A DNA stretch of 64,000 bases from Oikopleura dioica (GCA_907165135.1 OU015566.1:13826001-13890000), one strand, 5' to 3'; counted from the first letter of the stretch, positions 52,420-57,436 are shown. The notes: generated by a model from the sequence alone, not told the origin. Program-made: numbers and translations.

Positions 52420-55042
52420 ATGAAGATTTTTCCCGCGGTTTTTTCGACTGTCGCGGCGAGCTACGAGCAGCCAAAATACGATGCGTTTTTGCAGAGAGTC
52501 GTTTCTGGAGAGAAATCTGCCGGCTGGGGCCACCCTGTTGACAAAGTCGCGGCTCTTTGGAGCTTGTGCCCTGCAATGACTCCTCCTCAAAACGGCCAAA
52601 TCGTCTGCGACCAGTCGACTTGCGCCCTTGTCTGCGACGATGGATTCATTCCAATGGGCAGGCGAAGGACAAAGTGCAGATGGAACAGTACCAAGCAATT
52701 TTTCTGGAAAAGGACGCTCTCGGATTGCGACACTTGCACAGATTTGCCAAGTCCTCCAGCTGGCATAACTGCTGACTGTGGTAAGTTTTTGGGAAACGGC
52801 CCTGCTGCTAGGGCGAAAAAAATATTCTTCTATTTGTCATAATTATGGTCAAGTATGCTATGATCAACAAACCTTCACCAAGGTACTGATTAATTACGTC
52901 GAATAAAAAGGTCAAACAAGTACAGTTTTTTGTACAGTTATGGTCTCTCAAATCTAGAAAACCTAACTTTTCAAACTGTCTAAGCTCAGTAGGATGGTTT
53001 CAGAAACGGGCCCGTATCTGGGCGTACAAAAATAATTGGCTGGTGCAGATTAAGCATTCAGTTTCCCTCCATCGAGGTTTACTGACCAGCATATGGTCAT
53101 TGAAAGTATAGAAAAGTACTGTTTTTTATGTACTTATAGTTCTAGAAAAGCGGAAACATGGAAGTATCGCGCGCTAGATTTGAGGAATTTTGAGAATACG
53201 GCCCCCTTCGGGGCTAGCAGAAAAATTATTGAAGTATTGACCTTCCGAGAATAAATTCTTTAACTCACATCTCCTTCACCAAGGAAATCAATCACTAAGA
53301 ATTGATAGCTCTTCTGTCCAAGAAAAATACCAAAAAGTACAATTTCTTTGCCGTTTATGGTTACTAAAATCTAGAAACTCTTCATTTAGGAATCAACGCT
53401 ATTCGCAAAAAGAAATGCCTTTACAAATGCGACAATGGAAGCGAAATTTCAACTGCTGCTGGTGATTTTCTGCAGTTTTCTGCGGTTTGCGGTTGCCCCA
53501 GACCAGATCGCATTTGTCGCTGGAAGTCGAGAAAGGTTGGCGTCGTTGATTCAGCGAGCATCGCTGGCTGGACCTGTCCAAATCCCACTGTGCCGACAAC
53601 AACGACTCAGGCTCCAGGTTATCATCAATTGTTCTGTTCTTAAAAAATTTCACAATTCTAGCTACAACAACATCGACTCAAGGAGCCACTCAAAACCCAA
53701 CCAATCCTCCTACTTCTGGCTGCGACGCTTCCAAGCCTTCCACCTGCACTTCCCTTACCACCGCAGAAATTGGCCTGGAAAACGAGTGGTCCTGCCGAAA
53801 CTGCTTCAGAATCAACGCGCACTATCAACTTCCCGCTACTTGGCAAGACACTGATTTCGTCACGATCAAGTTCAAAATCCCCGTCACTTGGAGCACCTTC
53901 TCGCATCCAATTGACAATGTCCAAGCTCTTGATTCTGGCTTGACTTGGCGAATTAATTTTGCTGCTGGAGCAAATTTTGAATCGGGAATGATGTTTGATG
54001 CGAATTTGATGGCGCTGCAGACAGTGACGATGTCGAATTCGGCTGTTTTCGAGGAGATCAAATCTTGTCCCTGTACTAATACATCTGTAGGAACAACAAC
54101 TGCTTCTCCTGGCGGTGGAGCAACTACGACCCAAGCTCCAGGTCCAACTACAACAACCCAGGCTCCTGGTCCAACAACAACGACTCAGTCGCCCGGACCG
54201 ACCACTACTCAAGCTCCAGGCCCAACAACGACCCAATCTCCGGCGCCGACCACAACCGTAGCTCCCTGCACTCCTTTCAACACCCTCGGCAGCTTCACCC
54301 ACTACGATCTCCGCGACAACGACATTGAAAACGGCGCTTGCGGCTTGATGTGGAGCGGTAGCAATCTTGGAACAACCATGTTCGTCGCTTTGGATCAAGA
54401 TACCGACTACGACTCGAACAGAAACTGCGGCCGATGCATCAAAATGAAGTGCGAATGCACTCAGAGCCAGTTTCCAGGAGCCTGCGCTGCTGGACAGGAG
54501 ACCATTGCTATTGTCGCGGATAACTGCCCCGATGCAGGTTTGATTATGGAAATTGGGGATAAGAAATAAGGAGAGTGTTTTAGGATGCCATCAGGGTCAT
54601 GTGGATAGTTCTACCTGGGTCTGGAACTCGGTAAGCGGAAATGAAGCGCCTTCGATTTATGATGGAAGCTGGGAGTTTGTCGAGTGCCCAGCCGGATTCG
54701 TTCCTCACCCCGTTTCTCAGGTACCGGTCCCCCTTCTATGAGCCACTAGAACTCCTTCAGATTCGCTTCAAAACTGGCAGCTCTCAATTCTGGATGGCTA
54801 TTCAACCCTCGAATCACAAATTCGGCATCGTGAAAATGAGCATCAACGGCGTTGACCTTCCAAATGGTGGTGTCACCGGCGCTGTTGGAGAGAACTACTA
54901 CTACATCGCTGACGGAATTGTTTCGTCCTTCCCATTCACGATCGAGATTGAAAATACAAATGGCGAAACCGCCAGCGCGACGATCAATTCTGCGGCCGAG
55001 ATTGGTGATAATTTCTTTGTTGATCTTGATGCTCTTGTTTGA
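52420..55042 (+). CDS. Secreted modular protein (627 aa) with C-terminal two-domain expansin (DPBB + CBM63-like)
   Basis: Exons 52420-52780, 53390-53617, 53662-54537, 54584-54720, 54761-55042 total 1884 nt, in frame. D1: FTHY, GACG, CGRC, VADNCP, GHVDSS, WEFVECP. D2: IRFKTGSSQFWMAIQPSNHKFGIVKM, NYY, FPFTIEI. Confidence 0.9.
54120..54262 (+). repeat. Coding mucin-like (TTTQAPGP)n linker
   Basis: About 5 degenerate T/Q/A/P/G units within exon 3. Confidence 0.85.
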
Positions 55043-55154
55043 ATAAATCTCTTTCATTCTTCTTGATAAACAAGTTCAATGCCTCAGTCACATTTGTAAG
55101 AGCAAATAGAGTTGATTTAGAATTGAGAAGAACCACAAGATTTGAAAAGAGACG

Positions 55155-56990
55155 ATGATAATTTTCATTTTTCATTTGTCTTTATCGGGGGGCCCGGACT
55201 ATGTCGTCGAATGTCGTCAATGTCGTCGAATGTCGTCAATGTCGTCGAATGTCGTCAGATTTTTCTTCAAAAATGGAAAAAAAATCTAAATTTTGAAAAC
55301 AAATCTGTTCTAGGGAATGAAAATATGCTAAATTTGGCGGAACAATGAAGGCGGGTAAATAGAAGTGTAACCTGCCCCATCAATGAGTTTCCTACCACCA
55401 AACCCGCGGAGCGGGCACCTTCCATTCCTTATCATTAACTTATCAAAAGAATGTAAAAATATCGATTTTGAAGCATAATTACACTATTTTAAAGTAGAAA
55501 TAATTAATTACGGGGAATCTCGTCCAGTTTCTAGAATGAGATATTTTTATTTTTTTTCTCGATTTTTTTCATTGACGACATTCGACGACATTCGACGACA
55601 TAGTCCGGGTCGCCCGTCTTTATCTTATGCAACCAAGGAAAGAGCAGAAATAATAAAAATCAAGAAACACCGCCTTCAATTTTTTAATGCTCAAAAAGGT
55701 CTGCAGCGTCGATTTCTCCTGTGATTCCTTTTGCACCAACGAGAAATCTACTTCGATCCAAAGAGCTGCCACAAGATGCAAAGAAGCCGCTCAGGCTACT
55801 TTTAGCACTTGCACAGAGTCTTGTTTGGATGCCGATTGTGTTGAGCTCTGCAGAAAAGATCTGAACAATGAACTAGAAAAATGCCCCTGCTCTAAAAATT
55901 GGCTTCAAAATAATTTTAACTGGACTTCGGAGACATTTTTTGAACTGAAAGAATCAAGTTTAAGTTTAACAAAACCACCTAAATATGGTTCTATTTTTCT
56001 TTATGAACTTGTCAAAGTCAAAAAATCATCATCTTGGAAAACCTTATGAAAGAGATGAACCTCAAGATTAAAAAACTAGAATTGCAAAACACAGATGAGA
56101 ATAGAAGAATTGAAAATGATATCAACGAAGAGAAAATAAAGAGCCTTGAAAGTAAAGTAGAGGCTCTTATAAGTGAAAATGAAATATTTGCGTCTGAACT
56201 CTCAAAAATCACCAATCAAATCAACGAAGAAATGGTCAAAAATGAAACCTTTGGAGTTGAAGTTGAGGCGATAAAAAAACAAATACAAGAAATTGCTACA
56301 AATCTTACAACTCAACAAGAATCGCATTATAAGAATATTAGTGCTATTGCGAAGAAGCTTCAGAATGTAGTGGACAATGGGCCACTTGGAGGATATGGGC
56401 ATTATTTTGGAAAAGACGACTCGTCTGTGAGAGGCAGGATGAATGAAGAAGAAATCCAAAAAGTGCTCAAATTGCTCTCAATCGGTGCGAAAAAAGTAAA
56501 TTTCAAGGAAAGGGTTTTTTTTCTGATGAAGCTCAGGATTTTGAAAATAAAACTCCGAGAAGTTTGGGTACTCCGATCAGTGGGATGTCGAATCGGCTGG
56601 ATGGAGGCTGCAGTACAAAGAAACTAAAATTGGTGAACCAATTTATCTTTGGCTAAGCAATGAAAGTAAATAAAGCCCTAAATATAGATTCAAAGGGTAA
56701 TTTTAGACGGAGGCGTTCGGTTCAAAGCTGTAGCTGAAGAAATCCAGCACACAAGGGGGTGCACACGGTACGAGCTTTATAGCAAAAGCGATGGTCAGAG
56801 GCATTTTGTAAGGTTCAACGAAAATGATGAATGTGGTACTGTAAGATATAATATTGATATTCTGTAAAAACTACGAAATATGATTTCTGAAAAATATCTT
56901 TACTCGTCGGCAACCTTGATCAATGGCCATCTCAAGCAAAAAGTACCGTTGTTGTTAAATTCATTACGAGCCCAAGTGCGGAGAGTAAAT
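55155..56990 (+). CDS. Secreted Cys-rich + coiled-coil protein (possible MATH-like C-terminus); signal peptide interrupted by a MITE
   Basis: Removing the MITE gives MIIFIFHLSLSYATK, then VCSVDFSCDSFC...CPC, a coiled coil (ORF 56034) and FGYSDQW...GWRL...IYLWL. The 3' end is approximate. Confidence 0.6.
55187..55615. mobile_element. MITE with 9-bp TSD (Mutator-like) and ATGTCGTC subterminal repeats
   Basis: TIR GGG(G/C)G(G/A)CCCGGACTATGTCGTCGAATGTCGTC; TSD GTCTTTATC at 55178-55186 and 55616-55624. Confidence 0.9.
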
Positions 56991-57436
56991 CTTTTATTAC
57001 AGTAGAAATCAGTGAACCGAGCTGGCGGCAATTACTGACAATAAAAAATGCTCATCATTTATGCATTGGAAAGAGCAATTGAAAGAGATCTATATAAAGC
57101 GCGGTAACTTGTGCACTGACTTTTTAATTGGCGGGTGATTGAATATGCAAGCGGACAGCAAGTGGCTAGGTGGCCCGCTAGACTGAACAACGGTCGAAAT
57201 TAGGTGCTTGTTTCTGACTTTTTTCAACTACTAAATCCTCCTTGATCTTCGCGGCTTCCGAAGAGAGACTTGATTTTTAATCAGTTTTGTTGCTGCTTTT
57301 TTGATTGAGAGACTACTGCAGATTAGAAAAAGAAGGGAAGGGAAGGGATGATTAAAACATGCGCAGAGATAGGGGGGCTTATTGAACACAATCCAAATTG
57401 AGTTAGTAATAACCGTTGTTAACTTGGGGCGAAGAG

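Follow-up and report, generated by a model that had tools for sequence, protein, structure and literature searches.

A complete two-domain expansin at the C-terminus of an intron-containing gene of Oikopleura dioica

The 64,000-nucleotide stretch of Oikopleura dioica DNA that was analysed here (GCA_907165135.1 OU015566.1:13826001-13890000, in the following called the window) carries on its plus strand, at positions 52420-55042, a gene of five exons with a coding sequence of 1884 nt and a product of 627 amino acids (aa). A first-pass annotation, made from the sequence alone, had proposed that the last three exons of this intron-containing animal gene encode a complete microbial-type expansin. 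Expansins are non-enzymatic cellulose-loosening proteins. The gene was found to end in a complete expansin with both of its domains, D1 and D2.

The upstream exons of the gene model were built using the Norwegian orthologue as a guide. All four introns are of the GT-AG type, with lengths of 609, 44, 46 and 40 nt in gene order, and those of 40-46 nt have the usual size for this genome. Intron 2 is needed because the frame of the window is otherwise broken. By translation, exons 3, 4 and 5 are joined via the 46- and 40-nt introns into one open frame, in which exon 3 ends with ...VADNCPDA-G, exon 4 reads (G)CHQGHVDSS...PVSQ and exon 5 runs from IRFKTGSSQFWMAIQPSNHKFGIVKM... to the TGA stop codon. 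The expansin module comprises the last 229 aa of the protein (54267-55039). The motifs listed in the first-pass annotation all lie in frame, namely T-H-Y, GACG, CGRC and VADNCP in exon 3, HVDSS in exon 4 and IRFKTGSSQFWMAIQPSNHKFGIVKM...NYY in exon 5.

Exon 5 alone matched Bacillus subtilis EXLX1 (entry 2bh0 of the Protein Data Bank, PDB) with E=1.9e-4 and 14/27 identical residues, and the EXLX1 string quoted in the first-pass annotation agrees with residues 117-143 of that entry. The statement that the module closely tracks EXLX1 holds for these first D2 strands but not for the whole, for which identity is about 19%. The spliced module of the window scored 149 bits (E 8e-48) against a profile built from 75 non-larvacean homologues alone, and the match, far above what chance would give, extends over profile positions 8-194 of 208, covering D1 and D2. 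With the module of the orthologue, the PDB entries 9ms5 (3e-6) and 7wvr (2e-4 over residues 11-202) were found, all PDB matches being expansins except for a low-complexity PCNA artefact, and the NCBIfam model expansin_EXLX1 (NF041144) was matched with E 5e-19 at model positions 4-180 of 194. When 1.8 billion representative proteins were searched with a profile, 491 relatives were returned, the majority of which cover both domains. The resulting family profile A3 retrieved the solved expansins 7wvr (Talaromyces, 8e-38), 9ms5 (Streptomyces, 3e-34) and 2bh0 (Bacillus, 8e-27) as well as plant beta-expansins at about 1e-12.

The fold was assessed with an AlphaFold2 (AF2) model of the orthologue module, for which a predicted local distance difference test (pLDDT) value of 83 and a predicted template modelling (TM) score of 0.80 were obtained. 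In a Foldseek comparison with the PDB, the first 12 matches were all two-domain expansins (E 4.6e-13 to 8.7e-8, TM 0.63-0.80, approximately 225 columns), and single-domain proteins with a double-psi beta-barrel (DPBB) ranked far below them. The structural neighbours in the ESM Atlas and in the AlphaFold database were likewise all expansins. In the model, the two-domain architecture is present with D1 as a GH45-like double-psi beta-barrel and D2 as a CBM63-like beta-sandwich. Profile match, orthologue model and Foldseek comparison thus agree with the earlier assignment of both domains to the last three exons.

The equivalents of EXLX1 Asp71 and Asp82 and the aromatic F/W/Y strip of D2, which had been suggested to be kept, were located in the window protein (Table 1). 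As judged from the alignments, the Thr/Asp/Asp set of D1 and the aromatic platform of D2 are both present. The residue following T-x-Y is D in the window, N in the Norwegian orthologue and D or S in paralogue B (see below). At the position that we take to be that of the GH45 catalytic base, in an alignment with GH45 and plant sequences, no conserved acid is seen. The eight cysteines of the module are invariant or almost so in the family alignment A3 of 82 sequences, which are largely non-larvacean relatives, and a CPxxxC...H-x-D motif is present in the module.

Searches with exon 3 led to Oikopleura dioica proteins that are named 'Expansin-like EG45 domain-containing protein' in UniProt. Over its entire length of 566 aa, starting at Met1, the Norwegian orthologue CBY11346.1 runs colinear with the window protein, and its junctions DAG/CHQGH and VSQ/IRFK are identical to the D1 and D1/D2 junctions of the window. 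The gene at the Norwegian locus (L006) has the same neighbours as the gene in the window, with an IIGP GTPase encoded on the upstream side and an IRK channel on the downstream side. Introns 1, 3 and 4 are located at identical positions in both, with lengths in the window versus L006 of 609 vs 41 nt, 46 vs 251 nt (canonical) and 40 vs 42 nt, respectively. Intron 2 occurs only in the lineage of the window, the Norwegian exons 2 and 3 forming one open reading frame (ORF), and is a gain or loss between O. dioica lineages. Over the 228 codons of the module, the two lineages share 88% protein identity and 80% DNA identity. The ratio of non-synonymous to synonymous changes (dN/dS) is 0.039, at a proportion of synonymous differences (pS) of 0.69, which means that synonymous sites are near saturation. 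The expansin module is under strong purifying selection. Gene model, shared introns and synteny bear out the earlier description as an intron-containing animal gene.

Several further observations were made at the Norwegian loci. In the reference model of CBY11346.1, the Thr/Pro linker is spliced out together with the initial residues of the module (L006:5378-5545), though this stretch is an uninterrupted in-frame ORF; ORFs of other lineages retain it, and its removal is probably an artefact of the annotation within a tandem repeat. On the Norwegian haplotype FN654366 (CBY32701.1; L001:7293-7546), AT instead of AG is found at the acceptor of intron 3 and the model stops inside the intron, while the other Norwegian haplotype FN653082 (CBY11346.1) has the canonical AG. 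The AT acceptor may represent a splice-defective allele or a non-canonical acceptor. In both Norwegian scaffolds a GNAT acetyltransferase gene lies between the expansin and IRK genes; no tblastn match to it was found in the window, in which the interval 55050-57060 is repeat-rich instead.

For the analysis of expression, RNA runs from a lineage that is about 20% divergent in nucleotides (module identity about 80%) were used. The RNA evidence as a whole is weak. Ends of poly-A RNA reads agree with the Norwegian orthologue at 29/30 nt, which shows that this orthologue is transcribed. On the window gene, partial reads with 90-95% identity were placed on exons 1-3 only.

The remainder of the protein consists of several further modules. 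The N-terminal hydrophobic stretch was taken as a signal peptide by eye, and the two Cys-rich modules that follow show sub-threshold similarity to Pfam Sushi (E 0.055). The middle domain, which yielded no Pfam match, was modelled with a pLDDT of 85, and the structures that it matches best are CBM2 modules binding cellulose, xylan and chitin (VIA Z 8.8, 8.6 and 8.4; Foldseek E 0.03-0.1). With hhalign, no similarity was found between this domain and the region of a CBM2-expansin fusion (P0023) that Pfam assigns to CBM_2. Among the fetched proteins, the middle domain is confined to the two Sushi-type expansin paralogues and fragments. Thirteen poly-A reads (run X4) match only 53781-53814 (34 nt), which encode W-x-CRNCFRI of this domain, and their flanks, DLTNSEIFFE... 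and ...ELTMAPTVDS, fit none of the fetched loci, which suggests that another expressed gene carries the domain. The Thr/Pro linker is of the O-glycosylation type. Within intron 1, three diverged copies of a unit of about 200 nt start at 52906, 53102 and 53323. The TGA stop codon (55040-55042) overlaps the polyadenylation-type hexamer, which fits a very short 3'-UTR.

Table 1. Features of the expansin gene in the window (coordinates counted from the first nucleotide of the window)
Feature	Position	Strand	Description	Basis
Exon 1	52420..52780	+	Start codon, short hydrophobic N-terminus, first Cys-rich Sushi-like module	Gene model, colinearity with CBY11346.1
Intron 1	52781..53389	+	609 nt, GT-AG, phase 1	
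Exon 2	53390..53617	+	Second Cys-rich module and beginning of Thr-rich linker	Gene model, colinearity with CBY11346.1
Intron 2	53618..53661	+	44 nt, GT-AG	
Exon 3	53662..54537	+	Middle beta-sandwich domain, Thr/Pro linker, N-terminal two thirds of expansin D1	
Middle domain	53718-54086	+	Residues 216-338, predicted beta-sandwich of about 120 aa	
Thr/Pro linker	~54087-54266	+	TTTTQAPGP-type, 27-nt tandem repeat of about 4.8 copies	
D1 portion in exon 3	54267-54537	+	Bears T409, GACG, CGRC and D483	
T409	54297-54299	+	Equivalent of EXLX1 T12	Profile alignments including 2bh0
D483	54519-54521	+	Equivalent of EXLX1 D71	
D487			Equivalent of EXLX1 E75	Alignment
Intron 3	54538..54583	+	46 nt, GT-AG, phase 1, within D1	
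Exon 4	54584..54720	+	C-terminal part of D1, GCHQGHVDSS with D496	
D496	54604-54606	+	Equivalent of EXLX1 D82	
Intron 4	54721..54760	+	40 nt, GT-AG, phase 0, precisely at the D1/D2 boundary	
Exon 5	54761..55042	+	Expansin D2 (CBM63-like beta-sandwich), then stop codon	
F544/W545	54788-54793	+	Opposite EXLX1 W125/W126	Direct alignment
Y580	54896-54898	+	Equivalent of EXLX1 Y157	Family profile
AATAAA hexamer	55042..55047	+	Polyadenylation-type, function inferred	Sequence

In comparison with known systems, the same D1+D2 fold is found in the microbial EXLX proteins (EXLX1/YoaJ, 2bh0 and 3d30; Clavibacter, 4jcw; Streptomyces and Xanthomonas, 9ms5 and 9ms4; Talaromyces, 7wvr) with TM scores of 0.68-0.80, and the conserved Thr, both Asp residues and the aromatic strip of D2 are common to them and the window module. 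The structure-based identity is just 18-22%, however, and the window module has eight conserved cysteines and a two-residue insertion between the two Asp residues. Unlike the microbial proteins, it forms the C-terminal part of a multidomain animal protein whose gene contains introns. The plant alpha- and beta-expansins (Zea m 1, 2hcz; Phl p 1, 1n10) share the two-domain fold (E 3e-9 to 9e-8) and an HFD-like Asp but are only 14-16% identical to the module, and their Expansin_C domain is not matched (see below). The closest named relatives are oomycete proteins annotated as 'Expansin-like EG45 domain-containing' or as carbohydrate-binding. These reach 79-106 bits against the window module, as compared with <=30 bits for any solved expansin, and all eight named proteins among the non-larvacean relatives are of this kind (Lagenidium, Achlya, Aphanomyces). 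An Oomycota cluster is also the best structural match in the ESM Atlas (TM 0.77). The oomycete proteins are 25-33% identical to the module, carry other accessory domains and fall outside the larvacean-type clade.

This clade was recovered in a maximum-likelihood tree of 85 modules, which was calculated under LG+C20 with UFBoot/SH-aLRT support values and is unrooted. Ten larvacean-type modules form one 100/100 clade, whose stem is long (1.08 changes per column). In this clade, paralogue B (CBY18773.1, OKI2018_I69 chr1.g2287) is the sister of the pair made up of the window gene and its orthologue (99/93), and the GH9-expansin (gh9-expansin, GSOIDG00010457001) joins next (100/95). Paralogue B has the same overall architecture as the window gene with differently placed introns. 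In gh9-expansin the module is joined to a GH9 cellulase, as checked on the metagenome homologue P0160/L003, and the D1 intron lies elsewhere; the window gene, unlike gh9-expansin, has no catalytic domain. The clade additionally includes metagenome and metatranscriptome modules whose fusion partner is CBM_2 or a Sod_Cu fragment. On the marine contigs L003:3001-5542, L004:721-1731 and L005:975-2864, a larvacean-type expansin is fused to GH9, a Sod_Cu fragment and Pfam CBM_2, respectively. The GH9 fusion has a 39-nt GT-AG intron within D1, and a neighbouring aminotransferase gene on L003 is split into many small ORFs, as is expected from tiny introns.

Since the larvacean-type modules are monophyletic, the tree is consistent with a single origin, after which duplication and domain shuffling took place. 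As the sister of the clade, the tree places P0038, which stems from a fragmented NCBI assembly. A horizontal acquisition, for which a phylogeny had been called for, is plausible. Being unrooted, and with an organism label on only a minority of the neighbours, the tree singles out neither donor nor direction. The host integration that a horizontally acquired gene should display, in the form of introns, host-type flanks and vertical inheritance, was found. Scans of bacterial and archaeal genomes with single-protein patterns gave no relative, but the method detects close relatives only and its result is not evidence of absence. A word-based homologue search with the paralogue module returned Oikopleura-like fragments only.

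With regard to earlier reports, which the first-pass annotation could not confirm, expansins in O. dioica turned out to be already annotated and noted. Apart from the UniProt name, there is a preprint from 2019 according to which O. dioica 'contains an annotated expansin gene'; it leaves open the bona fide status of such animal genes and warns that animal expansin annotations could be contamination (bioRxiv 10.1101/637728). The paralogue gh9-expansin was described as enriched in the posterior Fol house-building cells, and a relaxation of cellulose fibres was proposed for it (bioRxiv 10.64898/2026.03.31.715263). No further paper linking expansins with larvaceans was found in the literature search. 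The window gene is an uncharacterised new member. Novelty is limited, since the existence of the expansins and the cellulose-relaxing idea are already contained in databases and preprints; what is added here is the authenticity of the gene, the picture of the family and the mapped residues.

To our knowledge, tunicates are the sole animals that build with cellulose, and we know of no molecular understanding of how larvaceans inflate a compact cellulose/glycoprotein rudiment within minutes. The reading that we prefer, with a probability of roughly 0.6, is that the gene encodes a secreted modular protein ending in an expansin that would loosen the cellulose of the house and let the rudiment remodel or expand. 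The likely substrate in a larvacean would obviously be the cellulose scaffold of the house. In order, the protein comprises a putative signal peptide, a pair of Cys-rich modules resembling Sushi, a beta-sandwich that may be related to CBM2, a Thr/Pro linker and the D1+D2 expansin. The D2 strip F544/W545/Y580, and possibly the CBM2-like domain, would dock the protein on cellulose microfibrils of the house, the D1 groove (T409, D483, D496) would disrupt non-covalent contacts of glucan chains without hydrolysis, and the compact house rudiment could thereby be remodelled or expanded. A house role is backed by the Fol-cell enrichment of gh9-expansin, for that paralogue only.

Some results speak against this reading or weaken it. 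The orthologue module stays below the curated Pfam cut-offs of EXPB1_D1 (23.9 vs 27 bits) and DPBB_1 (16.4 vs 28.8 bits) and below the cut-off of NF041144 (68.3 vs 100 bits), and no Expansin_C match is listed by Pfam for exon 5 (D2) or the orthologue. The comparison with Pfam that had been proposed as a check gave no match at threshold. The Pfam and NCBIfam thresholds are annotation cut-offs rather than structural criteria, and the module is a divergent member of the expansins; paralogue B clears EXPB1_D1 at 36.6 bits. When the exons were searched separately, Pfam gave sub-threshold matches only, since D1 is interrupted by an intron. Moreover, the fold model is that of the 88%-identical Norwegian orthologue and not of the window protein itself, and the likeness of the middle domain to CBM2, with borderline Z scores and without sequence support, is only a lead. 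Neither intron 3 nor intron 4 of the window gene is spanned by an RNA read, and no junction was observed, as the RNA runs come from a divergent lineage. Peptides or accessions of the gene were not found in the text supplements of the house-proteome paper or of the 2026 cell atlas.

Four other explanations were considered. The protein could be a structural cellulose anchor, an oikosin-like matrix component without wall-loosening activity, whose expansin module, with or without the CBM2-like domain, would do no more than tether the protein and its partners to the house cellulose. In favour of this, several carbohydrate-binding-type modules and a mucin-like linker are combined in one secreted protein, larvacean-type modules related to this one occur in fusion with partners that do not loosen (Sod_Cu, CBM2), and an association with cellulose is known for house proteins. 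The anchor reading is unlikely, since a pure anchor would hardly need loosening residues and the equivalents of EXLX1 T12, D71 and D82 are conserved under strong purifying selection. It is improbable that the protein serves digestion, being secreted in the gut to loosen the wall cellulose of ingested algae and to aid the GH9 cellulases. The GH9 family of O. dioica is expanded, and expansins are annotated in algae-eating bivalves (bioRxiv 10.64898/2026.03.31.715263, 10.1101/637728), but gh9-expansin, the sole paralogue with expression data, is enriched in Fol cells rather than in the gut. Another polysaccharide as target, such as chitin, peptidoglycan or a sulfated house glycan, is more improbable still. 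One solved bacterial expansin was deposited under the name 'Peptidoglycan-binding domain-containing protein, expansin', chitin synthases are expressed in perioral and giant Eisen oikoplastic cells (bioRxiv 10.64898/2026.03.31.715263), and the structures that match the middle domain best include chitin-binding CBM2 modules; yet the aromatic strip on which EXLX1 stacks cellulose is kept and the known fibrillar scaffold of the house is cellulose. Finally, despite the contamination caution of the 2019 survey (bioRxiv 10.1101/637728) and the AG-to-AT change at the intron-3 acceptor in one Norwegian haplotype, an assembly contaminant, a pseudogene or a decaying transfer relic without function is ruled out for practical purposes by spliceosomal introns at positions shared between two deeply diverged lineages, the fusion to animal-type modules in synteny with animal genes, the intact ORF, a dN/dS of 0.04 and orthologue transcripts in poly-A RNA.

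The loosening of house cellulose may also be set in a wider frame, which as a whole is possible but rather doubtful. A single ancient transfer would have brought an eight-cysteine, oomycete-like expansin into larvaceans, where it would have been duplicated and shuffled onto at least five carriers (Sushi plus CBM2-like domain, twice; GH9; CBM2; Sod_Cu), and the non-catalytic members, the window gene among them, would allow the compact rudiment to swell to the full house.

For the expansin literature, the results settle a doubt, in that the O. dioica annotations are real animal genes, and not contamination, and the expansins of this species are a small family that selection has maintained and that comprises several domain architectures. 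The gene described here takes its place beside the published gh9-expansin as a non-catalytic candidate with mapped residues, which is an incremental advance. If the single transfer and the swelling of the house by its descendants were true, they would constitute an animal counterpart to the expansin-driven growth of plant cell walls.

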